A stretch of 36,671 bases of DNA, from contig NIVC01003875.1 of assembly GCA_002269645.1 (NCBI GenBank), forward strand, positions 1 to 36,671, given 5' to 3'. The stretch comes from Macrostomum lignano. Its lineage: Eukaryota. Below are positions 1-30,923 of the stretch, piece by piece (positions within the stretch are counted from its first letter, which is position 1; every line of letters begins with the position of its first letter). The translations under genes and the position numbers were made by a program. The notes below the pieces were generated by a model, which searched no databases, was not told the DNA's origin, and saw nothing but the letters and a program-made list of their open reading frames with translations.

Positions 1-120
1 GAACAACAGGTACCGTCGAAAAGCTTGCGATAAGATGAAATGTCCGTTTTACTTTATTTGCATGTTTCCTTTGCAAAACTGCAGACGTGTACGATACGTG
101 CACACGCATCGTTTTCTGTC
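1..120 (+). repeat. 3' tail of an upstream array unit (long-junction form)
   Basis: Matches 31070-31189, part of the segment missing from the unit 1/2 junction. Confidence 0.93.
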
Positions 121-162
121 GTCTAGAAGCAACAATTTACCATACGGTAATTTAAAGGCTGC

Positions 163-290
163 GTGCATCCAACCCTGGCGCACTTTGGGCGTTTAAGCGA
201 CATTGTCACTTAAGCGACTCCCCTGGGCAGGCATACACACGAGCAGACCCCCACACAGGAGTGTACAGCGGCTTTGACTGTATTTATTTC
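163..290 (-). mobile_element. 5'-truncated, inverted copy of the tRNA-derived SINE (3' part only)
   Basis: Its reverse complement (…GCCGCTGTACACTCCTGTGTG…TATGCCTGCCCAGGGGAGTCG…ATGTCGCTTAAA…AAAGTGCGCCAGGGT) aligns with 560-695. Repeated at ~15319-15446 and ~31232-31359. Confidence 0.75.
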
Positions 291-364
291 TTTATAAAAT
301 TCGAAAAATTAGTTTTCAGGTAAATTTTCCTGTTTATAATCGAAGTTTATAAGCCGTGATGTTA

Positions 365-705
365 GGGGGGGGGGGCGTAGTCCAGCGGTCTAGCGCAGGC
401 TCTGGTGTGAGAGCAACCCAGGCTCGATTCCAAGTGCAGTCACATTAATTTGGGGCTGAATTGGAATTTCGGCTTGGCTCGCTTGTGCAATTAACGGCCT
501 TGAGAGCCAACCCCCAAGGCGCAGTGAAGTGTACATGCCTAACAATTGATAAAGTTAGGGCCGCTGTACAGTCCTGTGTGAGTGTGTGCCTGCGTAACGT
601 ATCCGCGCGTTGTATGCCTGCTCAGGGGAGTCGGCGGAATGGGCAGTAATGCCTCTCGCCGGTTGTGTGCCTATGTCGCTTAAAGTGCGCCAGGGTGCAC
701 ACAAC
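365..705 (+). mobile_element. tRNA-derived SINE, copy A
   Basis: G-run start. Pol III A-box-like TAGTCCAGCGG at 378-388 and B-box-like GGCTCGATTCC at 421-431. The body is not tRNA-like and is shared with a diverged copy at 10247-10636. Confidence 0.75.
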
Positions 706-2813
706 CCCCCTGTTTCTAATAAAAAAGCCGTGATGTTCCCTTTTTTTCAAATAATATAGATGAACCAAAGTTTTGCTGGAAAAACAAAAGACACGCAGAA
801 TTTTTATGCACTAGTTTGGTGTTAATTTGTAACTAGATTGTTTTAGCTGCAGAACCTGAAGTTTTTAAAAGGCCATACATGTATTGTCGGTTAAACTAAT
901 CAGCTGATGCATTTCACTAAAAAAATAATATTACGATTTCTGTATAACAATCTAAATAACTGTTACAGTGTATCTATTCGTTAACGAAATTTATAAACTC
1001 AATTTACTAGACTCATCCTAAACGCTGACTTCGAATAGTAGAAGTTATTTAGGGTTAGGCGAAGTGACGAAGACTGTTATTATAGCATAACGTGAAAGAC
1101 AGCGAGTATAAATGAACGAGGCCAGCAGACATAGACCGAAGAGCCGCTAGGTTCTGACCTTCGCTAGGTTACCGGCACTGCCATCAGAGATGTACCGCGA
1201 AATCGCCGAGCTGCGCCAATCTCCGAGCATTGAAAGCAGATGTCGCTCCACCACGGCGGAGCGAGTGCGTAGAGAAGCTGAAAGTTTCTGATGTGTCCCT
1301 TATTACCCGACTTATGGTAATCAAAGAACACTCACTTCTAGCTCAATAGCTAGGCAGCCCAGTAAGTCAATTAAAGGTACTTCTTACGTTGACGTCGCTT
1401 GGAGATATCTCTTCTGTAGTCTTCGAGTAGATCTCGCTTGTCTCTATGTGATCTCGTAGATCAGGCGCCTTGATTCTTCAGTTGCTCTGGTCCTGGTTCC
1501 TCTTGTACTTCCGATAAGTTCCTCCGGCCGGTATCTTCAGTCAGGACCAATCAGAGGCCTCGTATCAACAATGGGTACCCTGCGCCGAACAGCGGTTTGA
1601 ATTAAGCCTCCTTCTTCTAGCAGTGCCTTTATGCACTCTAGGTATGGCTCCGGAAACCACTGATAGTCCTCTAAGATCTATCAGGGGCAGTCCTTCTGGA
1701 GACTGCAACCAATGGAGTCTAAACAGACTCAAGAGTCTCAACAGACTCAAATAGACTCAAGTCTCAATAGACTTGAGCGAGACGTCTCTAACACAACGGG
1801 CGCAAATAAGGAAGGCTTACCGCAACAACTCGACCGAGTCTCGATTGACTTGGTGATCAGGAAGTCCTCCTAAGGCTTCCTCTTCGGAGCTTCTCCTCTC
1901 GTCGGGAGTTGGCTCCTGGTCCGCTTCGGACCGCTTGTATTTATAGGCAACTTTTTGATCCAAAATAGCATCATTACAAACCACGTGTTGCGCTAAAAGG
2001 GGAAAATGGCTCATGGCGTATCATTTTGGTAACATCTTTTCCTGGTAGCGTGATTCATTCAAAGCTTAGGCGCACATGCGTGTACTTACTTACTTATAGT
2101 AGCATTATACGATTATCTTCTTTTAACCTTTTTTAACGGGAGGTAGAACACTCTACATTTCCATTCCGGTCTTGCGAAACAAACGCTGCAGGCGGTGGCG
2201 AACCTCCACTGAGTCAGAAGGCCACCAAAATGGCGGCTCTGACGGACTAAGAATACGGGAAAGCTCTGAGACGTATCGAGAATTAGATTCAGCTGCCAGA
2301 GATGTCGGGGCGCAATTTGAGAGCGGCTGCTGAGCTCGGACCCATGACCGGGAGCTGGAGCTGGTGTGGATGCGCTCACCGATCAGCACTGTCTTTGAAC
2401 GAGCTACATAGATGGCCCGATTTCGGGTCATCCCGCCAGCCCCGAAGCGAACGGCCCGCGTTTGCAAAAGTCTATGGCAAATCAACCATCATCTCAGCAC
2501 ACCCGTTGCCGACGGGAATGGCCCGATTTCGGGTCAGCGTCTAACAATGTTGCAAAGAGTAGATTACGCAAAAAAATATTATTAGCTTAGAGATGTCATA
2601 CCTGTAATTATAATAACTCGTTTATAATAAAAATACTGCGGCAGTTTTCAACAAAACTGTAAAAATTGCTTTTACGAAGTAAGCTTGTTCCCAATGAAGC
2701 CGGAATAGTCTAATTACATGATTTATTAGGGACATTTTTAAAGAGGGAAATGATTTACAGACTGGAGCATCTGCAAGATACGAAAAAGTAAGCTGGTACA
2801 ATGGGTAGGTATT

Positions 2814-2909
2814 TAGGTAGGTAGGTAGGTAGGTAGGTAGGTAGGTAGGTAGGTAGGTAGGTAGGTAGGTAGGTAGGTAGGTTAGGTTAGGGTTAGGGTT
2901 AGGGTTAGG
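2814..2909 (+). repeat. (TAGG)17 followed by TTAGG(TTAGGG)3TTAGG
   Basis: Read directly. 17 units at 17971-18038 and 18 units at 33884-33955. Confidence 0.97.
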
Positions 2910-3131
2910 CTGAAAATTATTTGGCTTTTTTTACGCTATCACCTTGATTGCTGAGTGTACAGGCTGAAGTTTGAAGGCAACGAAAATGGAATAAAAAGGT
3001 AGACGAGAAGAATAAACAGACGATGCTGTCATATGTCATGCATGCATAAATTTTCCATCCTAACTTTTTTATGCGTAGCGTTTCTGTGAAGACACTTATA
3101 TACGAGTAACAATACAACAGCTTCAGCTTAT
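2907..3131 (+). repeat. ~225-bp interspersed repeat, unclassified
   Basis: A diverged inverted copy (roughly 90% identity by eye) lies at 30698-30923 with unrelated flanks. Array copies at 18064-18288 and 33981-34205. Confidence 0.85.
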
Positions 3132-3926
3132 AGGTTCAAATTTGTAAATTCTGTCCTACTCAAAGCTAAAAAACACGTATGATCATTGTATGAGCATTAT
3201 GTCGTGTTCCATTTTAATTAACTAAAAATAAGTTGTTTTGCAGTTGGAAGACATGTGATGTGTTTTAGGAAAAAACGACTCCACAGATTCATTAAACATT
3301 CTATCTGTTCTAAAATTAGCAAAGCATTCGACTTAAGCGACAGAAGTCCTCGTACACTGTCTTAACAAGTTTTCATTGCTTTCCATAAAGCACCATCCAA
3401 CCCAGTCAATAGTTTTAGTTTTCACCTGAGATTTCTTGTAAGACCATTATAGTTTAAATGTACTACACTTCGCTATGCTTTGATAGCAAATTATGAAGAT
3501 ATGAAATCAATTCTCTATATTGATATGACCAAAACACCAGAAATACTTCAGGGGGTGATTTCTGAAATGAAGTGTTGAGATACGGCACACTTTTACCTTC
3601 AAGGCATTCTGTATTACAATATTTATGATTTATTACGTTCTATATGGATAAACTCGAAACCAAAATCAGCGAAAATTGGAAGTCTTGTGTCAAAATTAGC
3701 CTCGAAATTAGTGGAAGAGTTGCCTAGATATTGCCAGATTTGGTTTTATATACTTTAATTAAAAGCTGTCTAAATTTGATGTTCGGCCTGTTTACTGGAA
3801 GTTGATTTAATTTAGTGGAAAGAAGATTAACGGGCATAAATACGAACAGGAACACTGAAACAGCAGTTTTCCGCTTACTAGCTCGTATGCCATGCCCGCA
3901 GCGCCCTGCAGCTGAACCAGACTGCG

Positions 3927-6900
3927 ATGAAAACATGCACCAGATTTTTTCGTTACTTTCAACTCATTGTGTTTGGCTTGTTATTTTGGTTTTCTCCATC
4001 CGGTACGTTTATTCTGTTTTGATTAGAGTCAGAAAAAACCAGTTTGCTCTTGCTAAAACGTGGGTTACTAAAAACGCAGAGTGCTGTTCCGGTAGGACGC
4101 TTTACTCGTCATCTGGAACGATCGCGTGCCCCTCCTCTGGAGGCCAGTATTCAAACAATTTGGATGTTTCCTGGTCTATTCGACCACGTGGTGTCAGCCG
4201 AATCCGATTCAGCAAGCTGGATGTGGATTCGTGCTGCGACAAAGTTTTAATTTATGAAAGCGCAATCTACGCATCAAGCAGCTCAGAGAAGTTTCGACTT
4301 GTGCATGCAAACGCGACTGAGTCTGAGTTCTGGGTGAATTCGCCCTTTGTTGTGCGGTTTCGAAGTGACGGGTTTCACACGAGATCCGGATTTCGGCTTT
4401 CTTACGAACGCCAGTGGGAATCGATTCCAGGTGAATTTTATGCCTTACGTTTATAACAGCACTCTGGTTGACTTTTGCTGATTTATTTGATCTCGGATGA
4501 AAATGGAATTTCAGCTGCTACTGAGGTCATTCGGCAGAGAAGCGGTGTCAGACGGAGCCATCCAGATGTCGGGTCCTACCGCAATAACTACAAAAAAGCT
4601 TGGAGTATTTACGTGCCCAGAAATTCCCGTGTTTTCATTCGATTCACAAAGTTCAACACGGAATCTGGCCGCGACTATCTTAGGATATATTCAGGACTTG
4701 TTCCGCGATATCAACACACGGCTCTGCAAGCGATTTCAGGCAATCATAGAATTCTTCATCCGTCATACACGTTTTCGCATAGCGTTACCCTAATTTTCAC
4801 TACTGACGGCTCTGTTGTCCGTGAAGGGTTCGAATTTGAGTTCAATGTCCGTGAGTGATACAAGACGTCAACAGTATCTGGCAGTTTTTTCAGTTTTATT
4901 CAATTCAGAAGTTAAACTGTTCAGTGCAGAAAATATAAGTTAAAAGTTATGCAATCTTATGTTTATAGTTTCTTTTCTCGGCCAGATACGGACAGAGAAG
5001 CAACATAGTTTCCATAGTTACTCGTAGTTACATAAATCTGAATAAGTCTCAACATTGTTTATGTTGATGCAGGTTATTTGTACTACGGATTATGCGCCAT
5101 CGGCCTATCGATTATAATGGATAATTAGTTTTAAGCAATGAGAAGAGAACTCTTATAAATTCTCTTTAGATTACATAAATATTATCAACTTCCACAAAAA
5201 ATCTTAACGCTGCTACATTTACTCAGTTTGATACTCTTTACAGATGATCATGAATTACTGTGGATCTTTTCAAAATGGACCAGAATGGCCATAGGTGGCT
5301 CGAAATTCAGTTTTTCACTGCTTTCTATGGATCGAAATGTATCAGCTAGGTGTTACTTAGATCTTGAATGTGGAAGGCAAACTTCGGAGATCGCAATGAA
5401 TTCCGTAAGCCGGGCATTTATCTGCATTAAATTTTCGAAAAAAGTGCTATATACGAGCGTAATTACTGGTTTAAGTTTTTCTTATAACTTTGCATAGTGA
5501 AGGTAATATCTCTTGACCTTTCAAGTTTGCATTCAAAAGCTTGGACAAATTTAAAGAGCCTCAGATTATATATGAATTGTTTTTGCAATTCCTCCAGACG
5601 ATCTACTCACAATGAAGATCAGTTAAAAAATTGTACCTGTTTTCTGGAATCATCTCAGACACTGCTGTCTGCATTCGAAACATCACGTGCAGATTCCGTG
5701 GCAGCGGTATCAATGAACTGATTGAATCGACTCCAGCACCTGATGGTAAACAACTTTCTTCAATCAGTTTTTGAGACTCTGCATAGATGTTTTTGAAGAA
5801 GCGAAGTGTCTGTATTGCAATATTAGCAAAGCGGTTCAGTAACTGTAGCAGATTTTGATTATCCTGCTCTAGTTTCCTTCATACATATGAATAACTTTCA
5901 GTTAAGCCAGCTTCACTTGAAATCAGCCTGATAAAGCCTGAGCTGTGGAGCCTCTCAGATAGTTTGATTCGGTTTCGAGCTGTGTCTCAAGCCGAGTGTC
6001 GGCGAGTGAGGCATCGCTGCGAGCTGAGGCTTTTCAATGGAAGCGCAGTCACTGCTGTGCAAGTGAAGCGGGTAAGAATAATGTAACAATGCGTAGTTAA
6101 AATATTTAGCATAATATAATATACTTAGAGTAATTGCTATGATAGGCGTGTACAACTAAACGATGTACACTGTAGGCCCGTACTGATATGCAGATATACG
6201 CAATTGTATTTTCCTTCAATTTACAATACCCAGCTAGCGTATTTTTATTCTGATACAATTGCTACGTCAAAACTTCAGCAAGCATCACAGCCACGTATTT
6301 CTCAGTGTGTGAGCAGAGTTCAAACAGATTTTACTCTGCTGGCTGAGCTCATCGACACAGTCAATTCTACGATAATTTGTTACAAGCAAGCCGGAACAGT
6401 CAACTATTCTCTGCCGGCTATGCAACTGCGTGAGTTGAGTTAAGATTATGAAGTTAATGCATAAATATATGCGTATAATATAAATAATGTATATAGAGCT
6501 CATTAAAAACAGGAATTTTATGTATGCGCATAAAATCACTACGTTAGAATATATAACAGTATATAGCTATATAAATATACATAAAAATATATATATATAA
6601 TATATATATATATAAATATAATATATTAGAATATATAATATATATAACTATAGAATCTTCATACGAGCGTAGAAGCATGATTAGCGATATAGAAAAAAAG
6701 CGAGAACGATTACGAAAGATTTTAACTGATTTATTTTTGTGATTAATTTCATTAATTTTTAATCAAATAATTAACTTATTTGACTCTGTTTTTAAATGAA
6801 GTAAAAAGGTGACATTTGCGAGAGTAGGTTTGCAGAGTTTAAATCATTTGTTCAACGTATGTCATATGTACCAGCTGATTTATTCAATGTTTGGAATGTC

Positions 6901-8291
6901 GAATAAAGAAAGGTATTATTATGATCGGCTCCTTACAATGGTCATTTCCTTATATCAGCTGTTCGAGAAATTCAATGGAGATTCCCAGAGTCTACTGAGA
7001 TCGCTGCGGGTGCTCCAATGCGCATTTTATTAACAACAGCTGCAAGCATCCGAGGCCTGTCAGCGAAATGTCGGCTGCACCAGGAGTGCGAGAATGGAAC
7101 CATCGAAGTCCCGATCCGTGTTGTAAGATATAATCAAAATATTTGATACTTAATGAAGGCAAAAAGAAATAATAATTTTGGCTAAACATATTTGGCATCC
7201 GATTAATGTCTATTAAGGTTGATACTATTTGATATATACTTCTTGTGCGAAGTACTAGCCATATTTCCCACAATATGCATACACCATCAATTATGAAGTT
7301 CACTCGTCGTTTTACCTGCTACCACAGGATCGAATCGTCTCGACATCTTCGGGAAAAGTATTCCAGTTTTTTGGACGATGGCAGCGTCAAGTGTGCAGCC
7401 GCAATGTGTCTTGCGCATTCTCTGTGCCAGGAATGCTCGGTTCGATTGAATTCAGCCAATTACCTCCAGGTATTGCTGTTGACCTCTCTTGTGATTCATT
7501 TATTTCATAACAGCTCATAAAAACATGCGTTCTTAATGCATTTACAACCGTTTCTCCGTTTTATTGATTTCAGTTGAACCAAATGACTTACAGCTTAAGT
7601 TGATTGATCCTGAGCTGTGGCTACTCAACGGAGCAATTCAGTTCCGTGCGGTTTCCGAACACGCCTGTCCCAGTGTGAGGCACCGCTGTGAGCTGAGGAC
7701 GGCTACTAACTATTCGATTCCCGCGACGCTAATAAAGAAGGTTGTTTTTGTCTGTTGGCAGCATTATGTAGCTCGCTATTTGTGCAAGATAGTATGCTTT
7801 GCTTAACTTCAGGATGTCTCGAAGCCCATCGGGCCGCAGTGCTTCAGCTCGGTGATGTCGCAGTTCTTGGCGTTCGCTCAGCCATCAGACGTAGCGGGTT
7901 CCACCGTGAGGTGCCGCCTGCTCAACGGCAGCTCTGCGCTGCTCGTGCTTCCCGAAAAGGGTTTTGGTGAGTTTCGCAGCTGATTTCAGATGTTATACAC
8001 GAGAAAGCAGCCCTGCTTTAAATATCGCCTCCATCAACAGGAGAGACGAGGCTGGCCGAAGTCTGGGAGCGGCCACTGCTAGCAGCTTCATCAACTACGG
8101 CTGTTCTCGCCATCATTGCACTGGTAGCAGTGGTGGCCTGCTTTGTGCTGATGAGATCTGGTCGGTGGCCACCTTGGAAAAAATCTCCGGATGCGTCAGT
8201 AGTGAATGAGTCAATGAAGATGCAAATGACAGTCAGTAACCAATATTATGGCGAATCAGCAGGCATTGTAAGCAGCTTTAATGTGATTTGA
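3927..8291 (+). CDS. 12-exon type I membrane protein gene, copy 1: signal peptide-CUB-CUB-X1-Y1-X2-Y2-TM-cytoplasmic tail, with in-frame TGA in exon 5
   Basis: Exons 3927-4002, 4080-4430, 4515-4850, 5244-5404, 5598-5745, 5902-6071, 6279-6429, 6959-7122, 7328-7469, 7574-7740, 7813-7966, 8041-8291. All 11 introns are GT-AG (72-529 nt) with compatible phases. Signal peptide MKTCTRFFRYFQLIVFGLLFWFSPSEC. CUB motifs YSNNLDVSWSI...FRSDG...GFRLSY and YRNN...WSI...FNTE..RDYLRIY...FTTDGS...GF. Internal homology exon 4~8, 5~9, 6~10, 7~11. TM LLAASSTTAVLAIIALVAVVACFVLM. Stop TGA at 8289-8291. Confidence 0.88.
6540..6655. repeat. AT-rich low-complexity (TA)n-like tract in intron 7
   Basis: Almost pure A/T with TATA iterations. 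Also at ~21697-21812. Confidence 0.85.
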
Positions 8292-8588
8292 GGCACCAGA
8301 CTTCATCATATTTTCAGCAATGTCAAATTATTAATCATGCTTGCATCCGACTTTCAGCCTGATGACTCAACCGGAGTTTACGTCACGTGAAAGAGCCACC
8401 AAAAATGACTAATTACTACATACAGAAGACGATCGATACGAGCTAAAAAACCTAAAAATCTAGGGCAGTAGCTTTTTCTAAAATTTTTAACCTAGGTCTA
8501 TTGCTGCTATAGTTTTACTTTGCTTAAAAGTCAGTAATTACTTTCAACATTAGGTGTATATGTATCTGATAAATTCGGCAACATTTGA

Positions 8589-9210
8589 CTCAGCAACAGT
8601 CAAAAGTTCTACCCTCCAAATTGCAAAAACTTCACACTCACAATTCAACCCTCAAGTTACGCAACTAAGCCGCCGCGAGGAAGGGAAAGTTGATTGAATA
8701 TCAATACTCGTAGTAAAATCATAATTTTTTATGCAATATTTAGTTAGAATCGCGATGCGTGTGGGATCCCCTCGCACGCAGTAAGTGCGACGACTCTGCG
8801 GGGCATCCCAATGATGAGGCGGCGCAGAAAGTCCTGGGGAAGCCGCTCCGAAGCGTTTTCAATGGCATGACGCAGAGCTCTCCGCAACATTCTGTGGTGG
8901 ATTCTCTTTTCGAATGCTACGTTTTAGGAAGTCCCAGACATGCTCGATGGGATTCATGTCTGGGGACCGGGAAGGCCAGCGCAGAGTGCGCAGCTGTAGC
9001 TGTTCCTTCAGTTGACTAACAGCATCGGCTTGGTGTGGCGGGGCGTTGTTCCTGAGCTAGGTCTGCTTAATGTCCAGGCCTGGACCATTAAGCAGACCCA
9101 AGCCACCCCCAAGCGGCAATAAGCTTTGCGCGTGCCGTAGGTTGCGTCACTCGCAATAAGTTAAAAAAATCATCACGCTTAGTGGGGTGGAACTTTTGAC
9201 TGTTGCTGAG
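8589..9210 (-). mobile_element. Internally deleted Tc1/mariner (Tc1, DD34E) element, 622 bp
   Basis: 26-bp TIRs CTCAGCAACAGTCAAAAGTTC(T/C)ACCC (8589-8614 and 9185-9210, 25/26 identical), with TA after the right end. The minus strand (8744-9054, two frameshifts) encodes Q[D]NAPPHQADAVSQLKEQLQLRTLRWPSRSPDMNPIEHVWDFLKRSIR…LPQDFLRRLIIGMPRRV. This is the Tc1 DNAxxH/WPxxSPDxNPIE signature, with 34 residues between D and E. Confidence 0.9.
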
Positions 9211-10246
9211 TATATCAATATTAACCCGATGTAATAGCCTCTCCTGTACTCCTGATGGTCCTGATGCTTTATATAGTATAAAGTAAAACCAATTATCTTG
9301 TCATTTACTCAAGGTAGGTAATGCTCAACTGTAGAGCACTAATTAAAACAACATTGATCATCAATAAATAACTTTGCAATCCAATAGATAAAATGATTGA
9401 TTAAATTCTGTGTTTTTGACCTTGATGAAATTTGAAATTGCGAATCGACGGTTTTAAAATATTTGATAAGAAGTATAATCACGCCAATTTATTTCTACTG
9501 AAGTTTTTCGTCTGTTTGGTTTGGTGTTTAAAGTTATTGCGAGATTATTGCAATTGAAATTTAGATTTAAAATTAATAAGTCTGTAAATTTCATCAATCT
9601 TTAGCATCAAGTCTTTAGCAACATGTATATCCGTTTGCTATTATAAGTTATTTTATTTATAGATGTTTCTTGTCCTTACAGAAGTGACAGCCTACTAGAA
9701 GATAGTATAGTAGCTCTAGCTTAGAAAAAGTATTAGCTTAGTTCGCTTGGACTCGGGTATTCATTAAAACCGCATGAAATTCTAAGATTCGGTGTCAGCG
9801 TTTGGGTGGAGTCTAGTGACGAAGTTTATTAATATATTATATAATATATTCAATACCGAATAGAAACGCTGTAACAATTATACAGACTGTACTATAAGAG
9901 TTATACTACAAGCTATTAAAGTTCTTTACTGAAATACATCAACCGATTAATTTATTGATAATATGGCTTTCTAAAACGTTTAGGCTCTGCAGTTTATTCG
10001 CAAACAGTCTAGCTGTACATGAACGCCAAAGCTTATGCATAAAAATGCTGCGCATCTCATTGTTGCCAACAGAATTTTGGCCAATTTTTATCATGTGAAA
10101 CATTAAATTCTTCCTTGCCGCAGTGCAAGGGGTGCAAGGGCTTATAAACTTCAAATATAAACCGGAAAATGTAATGTACGCTCGTACCTGACACTAGGCA
10201 TTCGCATTTCGCTTGATGGCTCAAGCAATAAAAATTTAATTACACC

Positions 10247-10636
10247 GGGCCGTAGCCCAGTGATCTATAGTGAGGTAGTGTCTGCGGCCCAGGCTCGAGT
10301 CAAAGTGCAGTCACATTTATTGAAGTCCTAATTGGAATCTCAGCTTGGCTCTGCTCATGCAATTAGCAGCCTTGAGGGCCAATCACAAGGCGCAGTGAAG
10401 TGTGCATTCTAGACGATAATTAAATAAAGTTAGGGTTGCTGTACACTCCTGTGTGAGAGGATAATTAAATAAAGTTAGGGCTGCTGTACACTCCTGTGTG
10501 AGAGGATAATTAAATAAAGTTAGGGATGCTGTACACTCCTGTGTGAGAGTATGCCTGTGCGTATGACTGCGTACGTATCCGTGCGATTGTGCTCAGGGAG
10601 TCGTGGGAATGGGCAGTAATGTCTCTCGCTGGTTTT
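10247..10636 (+). mobile_element. tRNA-derived SINE, diverged copy B with internal 3x45-bp duplication
   Basis: A-box-like TAGCCCAGTGA at 10253 and B-box-like GGCTCGAGTC at 10292. Shares AAGTGCAGTCACATT, AATTGGAAT, CAAGGCGCAGTGAAGTGT and GGAATGGGCAGTAATG with copy A. Unit 2 copy at 25400-25790. Confidence 0.75.
10415..10549 (+). repeat. 3 x 45-bp tandem repeat GATAATTAAATAAAGTTAGGG(T/C/A)TGCTGTACACTCCTGTGTGAGAG
   Basis: Units at 10415, 10460 and 10505 differ at one position. Also at 25568-25702. Confidence 0.97.
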
Positions 10637-11306
10637 GTGACGAAACTTTTTTCTTACTTTTTTATCTTACCCGTATTGCACACATGTATTAGTAGCTGAT
10701 CTCTGTTAGCATACCATTTGTACAAGCTTACTATAAAAAAACAGAAACGACAGCGAGACAGCTTGCTTATCAGGGCATACCTGCAGATATCTCAGATCCT
10801 GTAAGCGTCCAAGTTAAATTGCAACCATGGGAGGTTATGTATACGACGAACATTCAAATGAAAAAGTGCTCCAATGGTGGCAAAAACTTTCATTGGCAGT
10901 AGATTTTGGCACGCTGAAGACACAGGCCGAGTAAAAAACTTGGCTAAGAATAAAGCATACTCAAGCTATCAAGCCTAAAGCCCTGATAAAATGAAGTACG
11001 ATCGTAGATGTGTCGTCGGATTGTCAGATCCACCGCGAGATTATTTTATCTTTCGATCAAATTAGTTTTTTTACAGTTACTTGTTCTTTAGTTTGTGCAA
11101 TTTCACTCTTGGACGTTTTTGACTCACTAAGTAATTGTTCTTGGTCACGCACCAACCCATATAATGGCTGTGCACGCTACTCTCTAGTCGTATGCACTTC
11201 AGCTAAGCCGACCACTAAGCAGCTAAAGGGCACGCTCTACTGTCTTATAAACTTGCAATCAACTTCCCTCGGTCTCCGAACCCATAAGTTCGCAATGCTA
11301 TTTGCA

Positions 11307-11580
11307 CTCAGCAACATTGAAAAGTCGCCACTCTTTGCTCCAATGAGCAATTTCTCTTGAACTTCTAGTAATTCTGAAAAAAATTACTAGAAAACTGATC
11401 GGGTAGCTTTAATCCGTCCAACCCTCGCACACCGCTCCCCCCACTTCATTCCTTAACTCAAGTCTGCCGTGGCGTAGCTGATTTGCGTCACTCGCAAAGA
11501 TTCAGAGACTTTACCTGCACTCTCAAAAGTGGCGACCTCGAAGGAATCTTCGGTGATGGAGAATTTTCGGTGTTACTGAG
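11307..11580. mobile_element. 274-bp MITE-like element with Tc1-type CTCAG termini
   Basis: Left end CTCAGCAACATTGAAAAGTCGCCACT. Right end (reverse complement) CTCAGTAACACCGAAAA[27 nt]GTCGCCACTTTTG, followed by TA. Shares the subterminal TTGCGTCACTCGCAA with the Tc1 element (9142-9156). Unit 2 copy at 26461-26734. Confidence 0.65.
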
Positions 11581-12415
11581 TATATAGGGCCCGATATATA
11601 CGATAAGATCGTTTTTAACTCCTATCTCCACAGTGTAAAAGTTCCTACGTACGATCAAACTTACGCTACGACAGCTTTAGAGTACGACCCCATAGTTTTT
11701 AAATGCGTTCTCGTCAGGACGATCAGATCGATGAAGCGGTGGGAAGCCAAGGCAGCTGACGCATTGAAATTGAACCTTACCCCGATTGTCAAGGCAACTT
11801 CGTGAGTTTTAACAAACATTAAAATTACTCCGCGAATGAATACATTTTTTACGATAATGAAATTTGAACATACCCACGCGCTTATTGTTGATCGTAATCT
11901 AGTCTCTAAAATTTAGATCTAAAAAGACACTAAAGTTTCTTGACTAACAGCGCGGTTTTAACTGATATTCATCCATCCATAGATCTTCGTTCATGCATAG
12001 AAGAAATGAAGTTTTTTCTGTTTGCAGAACAATTAACCTCAAAAGTCATCAGTTAATGAATGAACGAATATGAACAGATTGTCAACACAAAATACCATAA
12101 AATATTGATTTTTGCAAAATTCATGATATTAATTTCGAGCTGATGTGCAAAGCTTTTTATTGCATATTAACAAAATTGTATGAGTCTGTGAAATTCCAAC
12201 AGAAATTCAAATTTATCATTCTGAATTCTCCTATTTAAGTTTCTATTCATCCTTAGATACATACAGATTGTCAATTATGGTTTCTAGGTAAATTGCTCGC
12301 AAAAATAAATTAAACTGTCAATAAACTTAACTCGATCAAGAACGGTTGTTCTTTTGAAAGCAGGATCATTAAGAGCCACTCAAAATAGGCCTTCTGATGA
12401 CAAAGCGAACTGAAC

Positions 12416-12715
12416 TTATTCGGGGAGCGTTTGATCAACATGATTTACTTTGCCAACAACGGATCCCCGGGCACTCGGATCAACCCAACAACGAGATGAC
12501 CAATCACCAATTAGCCCTTTCTTTGACCCCCTGCCTGTGGCCTCCATCCCACTGCTATTGTAACCACTTGTGGGGGTGCAACGAAGCACAAGGAGAGATA
12601 ACCGCCGATAGTTCAGCTCTGCCGGCAGGATCCCCTCTTCCTCCTGCCCTCCGCAGGCCTTGCTTGGAATCAACCGCAGTCTGGCACCAAGGCGGTGACC
12701 ACGGCTATCTCAGGT
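12416..12715 (-). pseudogene. Degenerate DDE transposase fragment, probably Kolobok/Mutator-like type
   Basis: Broken minus-strand frames give AVVTALVPDCG, SKAC, GYNSSGMEATG, LIGDWSS and KVNHV. These resemble, in order, motifs I recall for Kolobok-type transposases (GVVTAI..TG, SKxCxxC, GSSxxME, GDGDSS, ECxNHV). Family assignment is from memory and has not been searched. Unit 2 copy at 27570-27869. Confidence 0.42.
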
Positions 12716-13242
12716 CATGGCTGGTCAGTTCAAGGAAGCATTTAATTTTAGAATGCCTCCTCTTTATTTAGGACAGGCTCACCGCGGCGCAAATCTGGAT
12801 TTTTTCGACAGTTTCAAGCACGGGAATTTCTGCCACCTCGTCCATGCCTAAGGGCTACCGGGCGACCGATCACTCACCTCCTGGAGGGGGACAGAACTGA
12901 GAACACCGGCACCACGGGATCTCCCTGCGCGACACAGTAGCACCAGCTGCCCGTGATCGGCAGGGGTCTGCGGAATGGACGGCAACACCTCCCTTCTGCA
13001 CCCATATTCTGGGAAGCCTTGCAGCTAATTCTAGCGGCAAGTGTGCAGTGTCCGTCATACAAAAGCTCGCAGTTGATAAATCAATCGTTTTTACAAGCCC
13101 GTACTCATGGACAAAGAAGACAAACGCTATAATATCCCTCTCGCAATACAGTTCGAAATAAACTGATACATACTTCCCCACCAACACACTGCGCGCTTTT
13201 TGCTAAAAGTAGTTGGTGAAGTCTCTTGCTAAAGTTTTCGAA

Positions 13243-13395
13243 TTCGATGTTGTGAAATTTTGACCTTGTGAAGTTTCGACCTTGTGAAAGTGGTTGCTAT
13301 TTGAGTTCTCGATGTTATGAAATTTCGACCTTGTGAAATTTCGATCGTGTGAAAGAAGGTGCTTTCGACGTTGTGAAATTTCGAGTTTGTGAAAC
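13243..13395. repeat. Degenerate 16-bp repeats (TTGTGAAATTTCGACC-like, ~7 copies) ending in GAAACCCCC; probable DNA-transposon subterminal repeats
   Basis: Read directly. Unit 2 copy at ~28396-28548. Confidence 0.75.
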
Positions 13396-14098
13396 CCCCC
13401 TTCAATGAATGGCTTCGAAAAGGAACATATTTGGCCCAGCCAGAAATTTGAATCCCTTGGGGAGTGGAGGGAGTGGGCCTGTACAATATCGAAAATATAC
13501 GATTCCCCATTCCCTTGCATTTTCTGTATCCCCTGTCACCCTTTTTCTGCGCTAACACCACTGAATAGAGGCCAGCTAAATTCCCAAAAGACACCACAGA
13601 TCCGAACCACCAAGAGCGCTTTCTTCTGAAAATAAAGTTCGTTCATTTCTTGGCATTGAGTTGGGTGTGTCAATAATTTCAGCATTAACGACAGTTAAAT
13701 TGATCAAATTTGAGTGTTGAGAACTATATGTTCGAATAATTGAACTAAATTTTTATCAATGTGTTTCATTAACTGGTTACTAACTCTTTTAAGGCTTATT
13801 AAGCCGTTATTACCCATGTGAATGTTACAGTTATTATATTTTTTACATTTTAATTACAAAGTTTAGCCTTTCAACAACGACGCCTAATCTGTTTTGCATA
13901 CTTGTCCTGTCTTACATTTACTACAATGAACAACAGTATCTGCTTGTAACTATCTATACTTCGAGATTTGTGTGTCATCTGAAACGAAAGGGTTGGTATT
14001 TTTAGCAAATATATACTTTCACAATCACATTACAGTGTGAGTTACAAACGTACAAATATTACAAACTCCATAAAAATTTACAACCGAAACAAATTCAC

Positions 14099-14217
14099 GG
14101 GGCGCTTTCATTAGGCAAAAATTTCACTTTGCCGAAAAGCACTCTCTTTCACTAGGCCGAACCTTATGGAAGAGCATACTCGGCAATGTGAAGTTTCGGC
14201 TTAGTAACCCCCCCCCC
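14099..14217. mobile_element. ~120-bp MITE-like imperfect inverted repeat
   Basis: Left arm GGGG…TTCATTAGGCAAAAATTTCACTTTGCCGA versus right arm (reverse complement) GGGGG…TTACTAAGCCGAAACTTCACATTGCCGA. Unit 2 copy at 29253-29370. Confidence 0.5.
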
Positions 14218-14330
14218 AAATTCACTAAGGTGGCTTTAAGCTACCTCAAATTTCCGAATTTCAAATCTTCAAACCCAAAAAGCAAAAAACTAAGACAGTT
14301 TTTCACTCAATCCCCCATAGCATTGCTCCA

Positions 14331-14566
14331 CTCCTCTCTACCCTCTCTCCCCTCTACCCTCTCCCCTCTCTACCCTCTCTCCTCTCTAGCCTCTCTCCCC
14401 TCTACCCTCTCTCCTCTCTACCCTCTCTCCTCTCTACCCTCTCTCCTCTCTACCCTCTCTCCTCTCTACCCTCTCTCCTCTCTACCCTCTCTCCTCTCTA
14501 CCCTCTCTCCTCTCTACCCTCTCTCCTCTCTACCCTCTCTCCTCTCTACCCTCTCTCCTCTCCCTA
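14331..14566. repeat. Polypyrimidine minisatellite, 16-bp unit CCCTCTCTCCTCTCTA
   Basis: Read directly. The unit 2 tract (29484-29700) is ~19 bp shorter. Confidence 0.95.
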
Positions 14567-15137
14567 CTTCTTTTCTAAAAGCCCGCTTTCTAAAAGCGCA
14601 AATATTTACAGGTGTAAATTTATCGTCAATTTGATGCTTTTAATCTTCTTTCGACTGCAAACAAAAAGTTGTTCTCGGGGGCTCTTAGCTCTACGCTACT
14701 AAAAGTAGTCTGATGCGCATTTAAATTTTATGAAACTTCACACATCTTTCCGAAAAAAATTATTTCACAATGTTGGCACTAGGCAACAGCAAATATAGCC
14801 CTAACGTTTATTGTAAAGAGTAACCACCTATTATTGTGATAAAAAACGGTTCTCCCGCTAGGCTGAAAGGGCAGTGCTATTAAATAAAGCTGCCTTGAAC
14901 ATGAAACACGCCAAACTTAGGTTGCCGCCTCATAGGCCGCCGGGCGATCACCGGGCGGCTTCGATTAGGATTAAAAAAATCGTCCATATTAAGGCTATAT
15001 AAAGTATTACGAGTAAAAAATCACCATTTCTCATTGAAAAATCAGATCATATTTCATTGTAAAGTGTAAATAAAAATATTTACCGACTGCCCTCACAGGC
15101 GGCCGCGAGGGCGCACACCGCCCACTGTACGCCCCAC

Positions 15138-15272
15138 TTAGTTGTCCCACTGGTCCCAGTGTCCTTCACCAGACTCTTTATTGCCAGCCTCAAAATGCAG
15201 AAAAGTCTTTGTGTCACCGGACTGTCGGTAGATCACCCACGATTTCCGCACAAGCATCGCAAGAAGATGAAA
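15138..15272 (-). pseudogene. Last 135 bp of the piggyBac remnant left at the deleted unit 1/2 junction
   Basis: Matches 30272-30406 with one substitution, then breaks off at the deletion. Confidence 0.85.
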
Positions 15273-15520
15273 AGATGTCTAGAAGCAACAATTTACCATA
15301 CGGTAATTTAAAGGCTGCGTGCATCCAACCCTGGCGCACTTTGGGCGTTTAAGCGACATTGTCACTTAAGCGACTCCCCTGGGCAGGCATACACACGAGC
15401 AGACCCCCACACAGGAGTGTACAGCGGCTTTGACTGTATTTATTTCTTTATAAAATTCGAAAAATTAGTTTTCAGGTAAATTTTCCTGTTTATAATCGAA
15501 GTTTATAAGCCGTGATGTTA

Positions 15521-15861
15521 GGGGGGGGGCGTAGTCCAGCGGTCTAGCGCAGGCTCTGGTGTGAGAGCAACCCAGGCTCGATTCCAAGTGCAGTCACATT
15601 AATTTGGGGCTGAATTGGAATTTCGGCTTGGCTCGCTTGTGCAATTAACGGCCTTGAGAGCCAACCCCCCAAGGCGCAGTGAAGTGTACATGCCTAACAA
15701 TTGATAAAGTTAGGGCCGCTGTACAGTCCTGTGTGAGTGTGTGCCTGCGTAACGTATCCGCGCGCTTGTATGCCTGCTCAGGGGAGTCGGCGGAATGGGC
15801 AGTAATGCCTCTCGCCGGTTGTGTGCCTATGTCGCTTAAAGTGCGCCAGGGTGCACACAAC
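15521..15861 (+). mobile_element. tRNA-derived SINE copy A, unit 2
   Basis: Same as 365-705 apart from homopolymer-scale indels. Confidence 0.75.
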
Positions 15862-18800
15862 CCCCCTGTTTCTAATAAAAAAGCCGTGATGTTCCCTTTT
15901 TTTCAAATAATATAGATGAACCAAAGTTTTGCTGGAAAAACAAAAGACACGCAGAATTTTTATGCACTAGTTTGGTGTTAATTTGTAACTAGATTGTTTT
16001 AGCTGCAGAACCTGAAGTTTTTAAAAGGCCATACATGTATTGTCGGTTAAACTAATCAGCTGATGCATTTCACTAAAAAAATAATATTACGATTTCTGTA
16101 TAACAATCTAAATAACTGTTACAGTGTATCTATTCGTTAACGAAATTTATAAACTCAATTTACTAGACTCATCCTAAACGCTGACTTCGAATAGTAGAAG
16201 TTATTTAGGGTTAGGCGAAGTGACGAAGACTGTTATTATAGCATAACGTGAAAGACAGCGAGTATAAATGAACGAGGCCAGCAGACATAGACCGAAGAGC
16301 CGCTAGGTTCTGACCTTCGCTAGGTTACCGGCACTGCCATCAGAGATGTACCCGCGAAATCGCCGAGCTGCGCCAATCTCCGAGCATTGAAAGCAGACGT
16401 CGCTCCACCACGGCGGAGCGAGTGCGTAGAGAAGCTGAAAGTTTCTGATGTGTCCCTTATTACCCGACTTATGGTAATCAAAGAACACTCACTTCTAGCT
16501 CAATAGCTAGGCAGCCCAGTAAGTCAATTAAAGGTACTTCTTACGTTGACGTCGCTTGGAGATATCTCTTCTGTAGTCTTCGAGTAGATCTCGCTTGTCT
16601 CTATGTGATCTCGTAGATCAGGCGCCTTGATTCTTCAGTTGCTCTGGTCCTGGTTCCTCTTGTACTTCCGATAAGTTCCTCCGGCCGGTATCTTCAGTCA
16701 GGACCAATCAGAGGCCTCGTATCAACAATGGGTACCCTGCGCCGAACAGCGGTTTGAATTAAGCCTCCTTCTTCTAGCAGTGCCTTTATGCACTCTAGGT
16801 ATGGCTCCGGAAACCACTGATAGTCCTCTAAGATCTATCAGGGGCAGTCCTTCTGGAGACTGCAACCAATGGAGTCTAAACAGACTCAAGAGTCTCAACA
16901 GACTCAAATAGACTCAAGTCTCAATAGACTTGAGCGAGACGTCTCTAACACAACGGGCGCAAATAAGGAAGGCTTACCGCAACAACTCGACCGAGTCTCG
17001 ATTGACTTGGTGATCAGGAAGTCCTCCTAAGGCTTCCTCTTCGGAGCTTCTCCTCTCGTCGGGAGTTGGCTCCTGGTCCGCTTCGGACCGCTTGTATTTA
17101 TAGGCAACTTTTTGATCCAAAATAGCATCATTACAAACCACGTGTTGCGCTAAAAGGGGAAAATGGCTCATGGCGTATCATTTTGGTAACATCTTTTCCT
17201 GGTAGCGTGATTCATTCAAAGCTTAGGCGCACATGCGTGTACTTACTTACTTATAGTAGCATTATACGATTATCTTCTTTTAACCTTTTTTAACGGGAGG
17301 TAGAACACTCTACATTTCCATTCCGGTCTTGCGAAACAAACGCTGCAGGCGGTGGCGAACCTCCACTGAGTCAGAAGGCCACCAAAATGGCGGCTCTGAC
17401 GGACTAAGAATACGGGAAAGCTCTGAGACGTATCGAGAATTAGATTCAGCTGCCAGAGATGTCGGGGCGCAATTTGAGAGCGGCTGCTGAGCTCGGACCC
17501 ATGACCGGGAGCTGGAGCTGGTGTGGATGCGCTCACCGATCAGCACTGTCTTTGAACGAGCTACATAGATGGCCCGATTTCGGGTCATCCCGCCAGCCCC
17601 GAAGCGAACGGCCCGCGTTTGCAAAAGTCTATGGCAAATCAACCATCATCTCAGCACACCCGTTGCCGACGGGAATGGCCCGATTTCGGGTCAGCGTCTA
17701 ACAATGTTGCAAAGAGTAGATTACGCAAAAAAATATTATTAGCTTAGAGATGTCATACCTGTAATTATAATAACTCGTTTATAATAAAAATACTGCGGCA
17801 GTTTTCAACAAAACTGTAAAAATTGCTTTTACGAAGTAAGCTTGTTCCCAATGAAGCCGGAATAGTCTAATTACATGATTTATTAGGGACATTTTTAAAG
17901 AGGGAAATGATTTACAGACTGGAGCATCTGCAAGATACGAAAAAGTAAGCTGGTACAATGGGTAGGTATTTAGGTAGGTAGGTAGGTAGGTAGGTAGGTA
18001 GGTAGGTAGGTAGGTAGGTAGGTAGGTAGGTAGGTAGGTTAGGTTAGGGTTAGGGTTAGGGTTAGGCTGAAAATTATTTGGCTTTTTTTACGCTATCACC
18101 TTGATTGCTGAGTGTACAGGCTGAAGTTTGAAGGCAACGAAAATGGAATAAAAAGGTAGACGAGAAGAATAAACAGACGATGCTGTCATATGTCATGCAT
18201 GCATAAATTTTCCATCCTAACTTTTTTATGCGTAGCGTTTCTGTGAAGACACTTATATACGAGTAACAATACAACAGCTTCAGCTTATAGGTTCAAATTT
18301 GTAAATTCTGTCCTACTCAAAGCTAAAAAACACGTATGATCATTGTATGAGCATTATGTCGTGTTCCATTTTAATTAACTAAAAATAAGTTGTTTTGCAG
18401 TTGGAAGACATGTGATGTGTTTTAGGAAAAAACGACTCCACAGATTCATTAAACATTCTATCTGTTCTAAAATTAGCAAAGCATTCGACTTAAGCGACAG
18501 AAGTCCTCGTACACTGTCTTAACAAGTTTTCATTGCTTTCCATAAAGCACCATCCAACCCAGTCAATAGTTTTAGTTTTCACCTGAGATTTCTTGTAAGA
18601 CCATTATAGTTTAAATGTACTACACTTCGCTATGCTTTGATAGCAAATTATGAAGATATGAAATCAATTCTCTATATTGATATGACCAAAACACCAGAAA
18701 TACTTCAGGGGGTGATTTCTGAAATGAAGTGTTGAGATACGGCACACTTTTACCTTCAAGGCATTCTGTATTACAATATTTATGATTTATTACGTTCTAT

Positions 18801-19083: not shown

Positions 19084-22000
19084 ATGAAAACATGCACCAG
19101 ATTTTTTCGTTACTTTCAACTCATTGTGTTTGGCTTGTTATTTTGGTTTTCTCCATCCGGTACGTTTATTCTGTTTTGATTAGAGTCAGAAAAAACCAGT
19201 TTGCTCTTGCTAAAACGTGGGTTACTAAAAACGCAGAGTGCTGTTCCGGTAGGACGCTTTACTCGTCATCTGGAACGATCGCGTGCCCCTCCTCTGGAGG
19301 CCAGTATTCAAACAATTTGGATGTTTCCTGGTCTATTCGACCACGTGGTGTCAGCCGAATCCGATTCAGCAAGCTGGATGTGGATTCGTGCTGCGACAAA
19401 GTTTTAATTTATGAAAGCGCAATCTACGCATCAAGCAGCTCAGAGAAGTTTCGACTTGTGCATGCAAACGCGACTGAGTCTGAGTTCTGGGTGAATTCGC
19501 CCTTTGTTGTGCGGTTTCGAAGTGACGGGTTTCACACGAGATCCGGATTTCGGCTTTCTTACGAACGCCAGTGGGAATCGATTCCAGGTGAATTTTATGC
19601 CTTACGTTTATAACAGCACTCTGGTTGACTTTTGCTGATTTATTTGATCTCGGATGAAAATGGAATTTCAGCTGCTACTGAGGTCATTCGGCAGAGAAGC
19701 GGTGTCAGACGGAGCCATCCAGATGTCGGGTCCTACCGCAATAACTACAAAAAAGCTTGGAGTATTTACGTGCCCAGAAATTCCCGTGTTTTCATTCGAT
19801 TCACAAAGTTCAACACGGAATCTGGCCGCGACTATCTTAGGATATATTCAGGACTTGTTCCGCGATATCAACACACGGCTCTGCAAGCGATTTCAGGCAA
19901 TCATAGAATTCTTCATCCGTCATACACGTTTTCGCATAGCGTTACCCTAATTTTCACTACTGACGGCTCTGTTGTCCGTGAAGGGTTCGAATTTGAGTTC
20001 AATGTCCGTGAGTGATACAAGACGTCAACAGTATCTGGCAGTTTTTTCAGTTTTATTCAATTCAGAAGTTAAACTGTTCAGTGCAGAAAATATAAGTTAA
20101 AAGTTATGCAATCTTATGTTTATAGTTTCTTTTCTCGGCCAGATACGGACAGAGAAGCAACATAGTTTCCATAGTTACTCGTAGTTACATAAATCTGAAT
20201 AAGTCTCAACATTGTTTATGTTGATGCAGGTTATTTGTACTACGGATTATGCGCCATCGGCCTATCGATTATAATGGATAATTAGTTTTAAGCAATGAGA
20301 AGAGAACTCTTATAAATTCTCTTTAGATTACATAAATATTATCAACTTCCACAAAAAATCTTAACGCTGCTACATTTACTCAGTTTGATACTCTTTACAG
20401 ATGATCATGAATTACTGTGGATCTTTTCAAAATGGACCAGAATGGCCATAGGTGGCTCGAAATTCAGTTTTTCACTGCTTTCTATGGATCGAAATGTATC
20501 AGCTAGGTGTTACTTAGATCTTGAATGTGGAAGGCAAACTTCGGAGATCGCAATGAATTCCGTAAGCCGGGCATTTATCTGCATTAAATTTTCGAAAAAA
20601 GTGCTATATACGAGCGTAATTACTGGTTTAAGTTTTTCTTATAACTTTGCATAGTGAAGGTAATATCTCTTGACCTTTCAAGTTTGCATTCAAAAGCTTG
20701 GACAAATTTAAAGAGCCTCAGATTATATATGAATTGTTTTTGCAATTCCTCCAGACGATCTACTCACAATGAAGATCAGTTAAAAAATTGTACCTGTTTT
20801 CTGGAATCATCTCAGACACTGCTGTCTGCATTCGAAACATCACGTGCAGATTCCGTGGCAGCGGTATCAATGAACTGATTGAATCGACTCCAGCACCTGA
20901 TGGTAAACAACTTTCTTCAATCAGTTTTTGAGACTCTGCATAGATGTTTTTGAAGAAGCGAAGTGTCTGTATTGCAATATTAGCAAAGCGGTTCAGTAAC
21001 TGTAGCAGATTTTGATTATCCTGCTCTAGTTTCCTTCATACATATGAATAACTTTCAGTTAAGCCAGCTTCACTTGAAATCAGCCTGATAAAGCCTGAGC
21101 TGTGGAGCCTCTCAGATAGTTTGATTCGGTTTCGAGCTGTGTCTCAAGCCGAGTGTCGGCGAGTGAGGCATCGCTGCGAGCTGAGGCTTTTCAATGGAAG
21201 CGCAGTCACTGCTGTGCAAGTGAAGCGGGTAAGAATAATGTAACAATGCGTAGTTAAAATATTTAGCATAATATAATATACTTAGAGTAATTGCTATGAT
21301 AGGCGTGTACAACTAAACGATGTACACTGTAGGCCCGTACTGATATGCAGATATACGCAATTGTATTTTCCTTCAATTTACAATACCCAGCTAGCGTATT
21401 TTTATTCTGATACAATTGCTACGTCAAAACTTCAGCAAGCATCACAGCCACGTATTTCTCAGTGTGTGAGCAGAGTTCAAACAGATTTTACTCTGCTGGC
21501 TGAGCTCATCGACACAGTCAATTCTACGATAATTTGTTACAAGCAAGCCGGAACAGTCAACTATTCTCTGCCGGCTATGCAACTGCGTGAGTTGAGTTAA
21601 GATTATGAAGTTAATGCATAAATATATGCGTATAATATAAATAATGTATATAGAGCTCATTAAAAACAGGAATTTTATGTATGCGCATAAAATCACTACG
21701 TTAGAATATATAACAGTATATAGCTATATAAATATACATAAAAATATATATATATAATATATATATATATAAATATAATATATTAGAATATATAATATAT
21801 ATAACTATAGAATCTTCATACGAGCGTAGAAGCATGATTAGCGATATAGAAAAAAAGCGAGAACGATTACGAAAGATTTTAACTGATTTATTTTTGTGAT
21901 TAATTTCATTAATTTTTAATCAAATAATTAACTTATTTGACTCTGTTTTTAAATGAAGTAAAAAGGTGACATTTGCGAGAGTAGGTTTGCAGAGTTTAAA

Positions 22001-23446: not shown

Positions 23447-23741
23447 GGCACCAGACTTCATCATATTTTCAGCAATGTCAAATTATTAATCATGCTTGCA
23501 TCCGACTTTCAGCCTGATGACTCAACCGGAGTTTACGTCACGTGAAAAGCCACCAAAAATGACTAATTACTACATACAGAAGACGATCGATACGAGCTAA
23601 AAAACCTAAAAATCTAGGGCAGTAACTTTTTCTAAAATTTTTAACCTAGGTCTATTGCTGCTATAGTTTTACTTTGCTTAAAAGTCAGTAATTACTTTCA
23701 ACATTAGGTGTATATGTATCTGATAATTCGGCAACTTTTGA

Positions 23742-30697: not shown

Positions 30698-30923
30698 ATA
30701 AGCTGAAGCTGTTGTATTGTTACTCGTATATAAGTGTCTTCACAGAAACTCTCCGTTTAAAAAAAGTTAGGATGGAAAATTTATGCATGCATGACATATG
30801 ATAGCATCGTCTGTTTATTCTTCTCGTCTACCTTTTTATTCCATTTTTGTTGCCTTCAAACTTCAGCCTGTACACTCAGCAATCAAGGTGATAGCGTAAA
30901 AAAAGTCAAATAATTTTCTGCCT
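30698..30923 (-). repeat. Inverted copy of the ~225-bp interspersed repeat, next to the piggyBac remnant
   Basis: Reverse complement AGGCAGAAAATTATTTGACTTTTTTTACGCTATCACCTTG…CAACAGCTTCAGCTTAT aligns with 2907-3131. Confidence 0.88.

Follow-up and report, generated by a model that had tools for sequence, protein, structure and literature searches.

A tandemly repeated two-CUB membrane-protein gene of Macrostomum lignano with a premature stop codon in both complete copies

The window analysed in this study (positions 1 to 36,671 of the Macrostomum lignano contig NIVC01003875.1; 36,671 nucleotides) was resolved by self-comparison into a 15.15-kb unit repeated head-to-tail in 2.4 copies. A first-pass annotation, made from the letters of the window alone, had described a tandemly amplified receptor gene at 3927-8291, and the tandem repetition is real in the sequence. 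The locus is a genuine multi-exon gene for a flatworm-specific cell-surface protein with two CUB domains, four further modules (M1 to M4) and one membrane anchor. Taking the evidence as a whole, we consider it fairly likely that this M. lignano-specific type I membrane glycoprotein gene is present here as a null allele or young pseudogene, which was recently amplified in tandem and has undergone conversion with paralogues. The coordinates of all features are collected in Table 1.

The earlier annotation had joined 12 exons by splice-phase tracing into a protein of 756 codons. Its exons, phases and GT-AG sites were reproduced: the joined exons over 3927-8291 measure exactly 2271 nt (756 codons and a stop codon), their phases are consistent and each junction is flanked by AG/GT. 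However, the frame is interrupted by a TGA at codon 314, and a 13th exon was missed. The proposed end of the C-terminal tail is probably wrong, since it was reached by reading through a donor (GTAAGC) after 8267 to a stop at 8291, whereas the paralogous protein PAA76314.1 is spliced at this donor to exon 13. The intron 8268-8357 and exon 13 were 100% identical between the window and the paralogous locus.

PAA76314.1 (A0A267FST9, BOX15_Mlig014562g1) is an M. lignano hypothetical protein of 759 amino acids, which was found with a non-CUB query and showed 88% amino-acid identity over 92% of it. Its locus on contig NIVC01000829.1, referred to as L001, was aligned to the window. It has been reported that the GenBank annotation of the assembly Mlig_3_7 was built from a genome-guided RNA-seq transcriptome (PMC5730564), and the exon structure of PAA76314.1 thus has transcript support. 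The two genes share the 13-exon structure with all splice sites conserved, as well as the order signal peptide, CUB, CUB, II-I-II-I (two module types, described below), transmembrane (TM) helix and a terminal VYVT. The exons were 91.5% identical, with roughly 190 differences and a single indel event (3 nt, in frame) in 2283 aligned columns, whereas the introns were 79.7% identical with 36 indel events in 2261 columns (Fisher p=5e-10 for the indel events). Together with the conservation of every GT-AG site, this contrast strongly supports each of the 13 exons as genuinely coding.

L001 differs from the window in having Arg (CGA) at the site of the TGA and in showing no tandem repeat within +/-10 kb. 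Paralogues that arose by whole-genome duplication in M. lignano diverge by ~2.2% (PMC10733133); measured against this value, L001 is an older paralogue (dS 0.15, introns ~20% diverged). Its flanks 9135-9815 and 14504-17780 are collinear with window positions 2944-3700 and 9206-13027 at 73-93% identity, which indicates that the older duplication reached well beyond the gene, and one block upstream lies in inverted orientation (L001 6910-7611, window 2847-2163). A query with exons 1-3 matched three M. lignano models in UniProt, of which two agreed with the window at 100% identity, and partial models of the window locus are public as A0A1I8GSH8, A0A1I8GS19 and A0A1I8GTH3. With these models and the full-length paralogue already deposited, the gene cannot be called hidden, as the earlier annotation had it.

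All predicted parts of the protein were recovered, from the signal peptide and the CUB pair to the four extra modules and the TM helix. CUB1 (25.1 bits) and CUB2 (42.6 bits) both exceeded the Pfam gathering score of PF00431 (21.4 bits), and the paralogue reached 66.7 bits. The four canonical CUB cysteines, which form two disulfides, are not present: CUB1 has an atypical CC...C...CC arrangement, CUB2 lacks cysteines altogether in the window and has one in the paralogue. The CUB domains of the window are divergent CUBs. The features of a type I single-pass membrane protein were found, namely an N-terminus that is signal-peptide-like when its n, h and c regions are read by eye, one C-terminal TM helix and a positive-inside flank. 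The helix corresponds to the single strong hydrophobic segment (about residues 686-712), which is followed by RSGRW; in a Kyte-Doolittle plot with a 19-residue window, values above 1.6 occurred solely at window starts 684-698. The abundance of N-x-S/T sequons noted before is also borne out, with 11 in the ectodomain against 3.9 +/- 1.75 in shuffled sequences (p ~4e-4).

Each of the modules M1 to M4 has about 100 residues and spans two exons with phases 1-0 and 0-1, in the order II-I-II-I. The two type I modules, M2 and M4, were 47% identical (E=1e-11), and the product of exon 6 was 47.5% identical to M4a at the amino-acid level (E=1e-11). Similarly, a profile of the type II module M1 found M3 (E=4e-6, 24.4 bits; best of 3000 shuffles, 12 bits). 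No homology between types I and II was detectable by searches of hidden Markov models (HMMs) against sequences with shuffled controls or by hhalign. The same methods gave no support to the notion of one repeated half-module per exon, which was rejected. The view that the ectodomain is unrecognised beyond its CUBs was upheld: among five family members the modules matched no Pfam family, immunoglobulin (Ig) and FN3 domains included, at E<=10, and no PDB sequence was matched at E<=10. Two module types are thereby defined that have no counterpart in domain libraries.

An AlphaFold model of the II-I block, calculated from a 4-sequence alignment and of low confidence (predicted local distance difference test, pLDDT, 59.7; predicted TM-score, pTM, 0.45), was all-beta, and its type II half contained seven strands. 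In Foldseek its top matches were all chains of two Ig domains (butyrophilin, antigen-binding fragment, T-cell receptor, RAGE) with probabilities of 0.97-1.0, while a single-module model from an 8-sequence alignment (pLDDT 51) gave no Foldseek matches. The module profile also matched bacterial Ig-like repeats weakly, over the stretch FRAVS..C..VRHRCEL..NGS. Based on the predicted fold, the modules are probably Ig-like beta-sandwiches, a tentative assignment. The likeness to butyrophilins and RAGE is one of fold level only: the identity is 9-13%, no Ig or FN3 match was found in Pfam, and the cysteines do not form the canonical B-F strand pair.

When the module profile was searched against 1.84 billion representative proteins, only M. 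lignano proteins were found, apart from weak bacterial Ig-like repeats and one repetitive protein; a separate protein search with the module alignment gave no matches. On this distribution the family looks lineage-specific, in agreement with the earlier annotation. In M. lignano it comprises three subfamilies with about 8-10 known loci. Subfamily A contains the window gene and PAA76314.1 and has two II-I blocks; the window gene belongs there by identity and by exons collinear with those of PAA76314.1, and it differs in that its frame is interrupted. Subfamilies B (PAA86082.1, PAA86983.1) and C (PAA75150.1, PAA48879.1 and others) resemble the window gene in their CUBs, the II-I block with 8 cysteines invariant across the three subfamilies, a WE[RL]PL motif, a TM helix and a tail ending in VY[VL][TN]. 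They differ from it in having one II-I block instead of two, longer tails and a module identity of 28-40%. Subfamily B shows more CUB-like repeats by eye, yet a single Pfam CUB stretch. In all three subfamilies a type II module directly follows the CUBs.

WE[RL]PL and the C-terminal VY[VL][TN] (window 8041-8390; P0014 and P0016) were kept across the subfamilies despite the low module identity, and are candidate sorting or signalling motifs. Three WormBase ParaSite models of paralogues, P0003, P0005 and P0006 (A0A1I8HLB7, A0A1I8I487 and A0A1I8GS11), have M3a, M4b and TM-exon frames that differ from those of PAA76314.1; these are pseudogene copies with frameshifts or else poor models, and the name 'CST complex subunit CTC1' given to one of the three is not credible.

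The architecture is already present in GenBank and UniProt under the names "hypothetical" or "CUB domain-containing protein", and since these entries include full-length members, the earlier description as a candidate new receptor family was overstated. The literature searched, including paper supplements, contained nothing on these genes or on CUB proteins of Macrostomum. What the comparison yields is a comparatively validated gene model for a flatworm-specific CUB membrane family listed only as hypothetical. Known proteins of similar layout were also considered. CUZD1-type proteins have a signal peptide, two CUBs, a juxtamembrane cysteine-rich module and a TM segment, and the present family is like them in its signal peptide, CUB pair, 8-cysteine extracellular module of about 200-260 residues, single TM helix and short tail. 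However, no match to Zona_pellucida (PF00100) was found at E<=10, and the C-x6-C spacing is, by reading, unlike that of ZP-N or ZP-C. Neuropilins, NETO/SOL-1/LEV-10, CDCP1 and DCBLD2 carry an N-terminal CUB binding head on a single-pass protein whose short tail has a docking motif. The window protein shares the CUB head, the single-pass type I layout and a short tail with a candidate docking motif with these auxiliary proteins and co-receptors, whereas their FA58C, MAM, LDLa and LCCL domains are absent from it, and no sequence relation beyond the CUBs was detected.

The in-frame TGA of exon 5 is carried by both complete copies of the gene (copies 1 and 2), and the 756-codon frame is consequently not open. 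The stop is a substitution and does not lie within a homopolymer. The third copy is truncated by the window end 3 nt into exon 5, ahead of the TGA position. Recoding of the TGA as selenocysteine was rejected, because there is no selenocysteine insertion sequence (SECIS) element and the paralogue has Arg at the site; an Rfam scan of the whole window found no family at the gathering score, SECIS included. An exon pair that would bypass the stop (5498-5578 plus 5659-5745; 700 amino acids, all GT-AG) was also rejected, as it diverges in an intron-like manner and is not open in the paralogue; its donor GTTTTT is weak. A general caution follows from this locus: exon tracing by consistent phases, carried out with no check for stops inside the frame, made too much of an ordinary copy that resembles a pseudogene.

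It might be proposed that the gene is still functional with a variable exon set, with exons 4-5 skipped or the stop tolerated, so that a CUB-CUB-I-II-I-TM protein is made and the amplification raises the dosage of a working receptor. All modules are phase 1-1 units, and the frame is preserved when exon 3 is spliced to exon 6; the remaining twelve exons of copy 1 are intact with conserved splice sites; and WormBase models of the locus and of one paralogue do join the CUB exons straight to M2. However, those models disagree with one another on the frame and leave out other conserved exons, and therefore provide no evidence of real isoforms. The retention of a type II module after the CUBs in three subfamilies suggests that M1 matters, the RNA-based GenBank annotation contains no protein matching the window locus at 100%, and the bypassing exon pair is not conserved in the paralogue. 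A functional gene is thus an unlikely outcome, if one to be kept in mind.

The copies of the array are very similar, with a substitution divergence of only ~0.07%. Compared with the ~2.2% of whole-genome-duplication paralogues cited above, this value implies that the copies of the array are much younger or undergo homogenisation. Copy 2 matches copy 1 without any difference over 1242-7828, and exons 1-10 are identical; the variation sits in M4b and the TM exon, in a patch at 7829-8227. Outside the patch about 10 substitutions were counted in 14.7 kb, and the remaining differences are 1-bp indels. Positions 1-5600 and 31070-36671 were 99.8% identical, and copies 1 and 3 differ by indels only. 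The two junctions of the array are unlike each other. Units 1 and 2 meet directly at 15272/15277 with the common motif AAGATGAAA, while units 2 and 3 are separated by a 783-bp spacer (30407-31189), which consists of 663 bp and a 120-bp copy of positions 1-120. The spacer also holds an inverted 226-bp copy of 2907-3131 at 30698-30923 with 96% identity.

Mis-assembly of a neopolyploid, repeat-rich genome, through expanded haplovariants and long-read consensus errors, could instead have produced the tandem units and possibly the stop and indels as well. The differences between copies are indeed mostly 1-bp indels, and Mlig_3_7 is known for erroneous copy-number representation with 93% multi-mapping read pairs (PMC10733133) and for 180 Mb in blocks at least 95% identical (PMC5730564). 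Such an artefact is nevertheless improbable in view of the unlike junctions, the clustered block of 17 substitutions between copies, a third mosaic variant in the model of an independent assembly (see below) and the nature of the TGA, which is a substitution present in both copies outside a homopolymer.

Identity between the window and L001 is mosaic. The segments 4431-4514, 5902-6429 and 7574-8390 were 94-100% identical, introns included, a pattern characteristic of gene conversion between paralogues. The patch of ~400 bp that separates copy 1 from copy 2 holds 17 substitutions and two 1-bp deletions in copy 2, and is a gene-conversion tract or one left unhomogenised. L001 was rejected as the conversion donor of the copy-2 patch because its alleles match at just 5 of the 17 substitution sites; the donor would thus be another paralogue. 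The two deletions lie in the TM exon and shift the frame ahead of the TM helix. The sequence exchange suggested by the earlier annotation agrees with both the mosaic identity to the paralogue and the patch between the copies.

These observations can be arranged into the following course of events. An intact gene has 13 coding exons encoding a signal peptide, two CUBs, four cysteine-containing, predicted all-beta modules, WERPL, a TM helix and a tail ending in VYVT. Its II-I-II-I order would have arisen by internal duplication of a II-I block that the sister subfamilies carry once. Judging from architecture, in intact members the CUB pair may act as a ligand-binding head, the four probably Ig-like modules as a glycosylated stalk, and the C-terminal tyrosine motif in sorting or signalling. 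A CGA-to-TGA nonsense change in exon 5 would have disabled the gene, and the null allele or young pseudogene would either have been amplified segmentally in the very recent past or be evolving in concert as an array; it may still be exchanging sequence with paralogues by gene conversion. The nonsense codon common to both complete copies, and the near-identity of the copies, imply that what was amplified, along with its flank, was a disabled or at least non-canonical allele. The window array is therefore most likely a pseudogene or null allele and not an adaptive expansion of a working receptor. The locus illustrates how a 15-kb segment with a freshly disabled gene may be amplified and patched by conversion in a neopolyploid genome.

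Several points weigh against the null-allele reading or parts of it. Apart from the stop, the exons of copy 1 show no decay relative to the paralogue (no frameshifts, dN/dS 0.48), so any inactivation must be very recent. Skipping of exons 4-5 would reopen the frame, and a shorter protein might still be made. UniProt A0A1I8GTH3 has substitutions of the copy-2 type with the TM region in frame and represents a third mosaic; further variants thus exist, and the copy-2 1-bp deletions may be long-read assembly errors. The Foldseek matches of the II-I block have E-values of ~1e-3 and TM-scores of 0.3-0.4 on a low-confidence model. Finally, the function given to the family is drawn from its architecture alone.

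The first-pass annotation had also proposed a recognition receptor family under copy-number expansion, which can be read as a diversifying receptor cluster of immune or allorecognition type under adaptive expansion. Compatible with it are the lineage-restricted family, the tandem copies, the gene-conversion mosaics, the heavy glycosylation potential, the putative Ig-like modules and a fairly high ratio of nonsynonymous to synonymous divergence from the paralogue (dN/dS 0.48 overall, from dN 0.072 and dS 0.149, and 1.1 in M2). By domain the ratio was 0.61 in CUB1, 0.35 in CUB2 and lowest, ~0.22-0.24, in the TM and M4 regions. However, the M2 value derives from just 13 changes inside a conversion tract and is the only one to reach 1.1; the variation between copies sits in M4b and the TM exon; the identity of the copies over exons 1-10 and their common nonsense codon are the opposite of diversification; the known loci number only about 8-10, spread over three subfamilies; and no paper on the family was found in the literature searched. 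Nothing links the family to immunity or allorecognition. Adaptive expansion does not fit near-identical copies with a stop common to both complete ones. We regard such a cluster as very unlikely.

A broader proposal is offered as a long shot: the Mlig014562-type proteins could be Macrostomum-specific surface receptors with CUB heads on an undescribed II/I beta-module pair, which are rapidly amplified and converted because they serve fast-evolving recognition of gametes or partners or of pathogens, and the window array would then be one birth-and-death haplotype. Unless the family has a recognition role of this kind, the locus has no bearing on a long-standing open question.

Table 1. Position of the gene, the repeat units and other features in the window; identities of exons refer to the paralogue at L001
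Feature	Position	Strand	Remarks
Exon 1	3927..4002	+	Contains the start codon and encodes the signal peptide (MKTCTRFFRYFQLIVFGLLFWFSPS); phase 1 at its end; ATG aligns with the start of the paralogue coding sequence (L001 position 10001)
Exon 2	4080..4430	+	CUB1; Pfam PF00431 E=2.3e-5; 90.9% identity, no indels
Exon 3	4515..4850	+	CUB2; Pfam PF00431 E=8.5e-11; 86.6% identity, one in-frame 3-nt indel
Exon 4	5244..5404	+	M1 (type II), first half; phase 1 to 0; 88.2% identity against 73-74% in flanking introns; in PAA76314.1
Exon 5	5598..5745	+	M1, second half; phase 0 to 1; premature stop inside; 91.2% identity
In-frame TGA	5613..5615	+	Codon 314, sixth codon of exon 5; CGA (Arg) in paralogue; same in copy 2 at 20770-20772
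Exon 6	5902..6071	+	M2 (type I), first half; 97.6% identity, next intron 97.1% (conversion tract)
Exon 7	6279..6429	+	M2, second half; WormBase models use alternative acceptor 6306
Exon 8	6959..7122	+	M3 (type II), first half; found by M1 profile
Exon 9	7328..7469	+	M3, second half
Exon 10	7574..7740	+	M4 (type I), first half; donor GTTGTT weak yet conserved
Exon 11	7813..7966	+	M4, second half; six copy 1/copy 2 substitutions
Variant patch	7829..8227	+	19 of 64 copy 1/copy 2 differing positions, after 6.6 kb with none; spans M4b and TM exon
Exon 12	8041..8267	+	Juxtamembrane WERPL, TM helix (AVLAIIALVAVVACFVL), most of cytoplasmic tail
Exon 13	8358..8390	+	PDDSTGVYVT*, conserved C-terminal VYVT; in PAA76314.1 and all three WormBase models
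Tandem unit 1	121..15272		15.15 kb; 99.6% identity with unit 2; differences mostly 1-bp indels
Tandem unit 2	15277..30406		Gene copy 2 at 19084-23545; shared TGA; two 1-bp deletions in TM exon
Tandem unit 3, partial	31190..36671		Gene copy 3 from ATG 34998; exons 1-4 as in copy 1
Tc1/mariner transposase remnant	8862..9056, in 8572-9205	-	Pfam DDE_3 E=1.2e-10; intergenic part of unit

The amplified segment, present at least 2.4 times, consists of the gene and ~10.7 kb of transposon-littered flank. When ten long open reading frames (ORFs) of the unit were scanned for domains, only the mariner transposase remnant was found. The stretch of ~635 bp around it is missing from L001, which marks it as a lineage-specific insertion repeated along with the unit. 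A short ORF at 1167-1343 (-) and 16323-16499 (-) reads ...HSLRRGGATSAF... and resembles the catalytic motif of tyrosine recombinases; it has no Pfam match and may be a decayed mobile element. Short tandem repeats were located at 14331-14562 (a 16-bp array, CTCCTCTCTACCCTCT x14.5), 10411-10549 (a 45-bp repeat x3.1), 2804-2887 ((GGTA)n) and 6560-6647 (an AT-rich tract that lies in the intron separating exon 7 from exon 8). The 16-bp array accounts for the dips in GC skew at 14-15 kb and 29-30 kb. Furthermore, a dispersed repeat of ~170-250 bp occurs twice per unit (417-669 and 10288-10639, 78-81% identity) and has a relative in L001 at 16383-16852.

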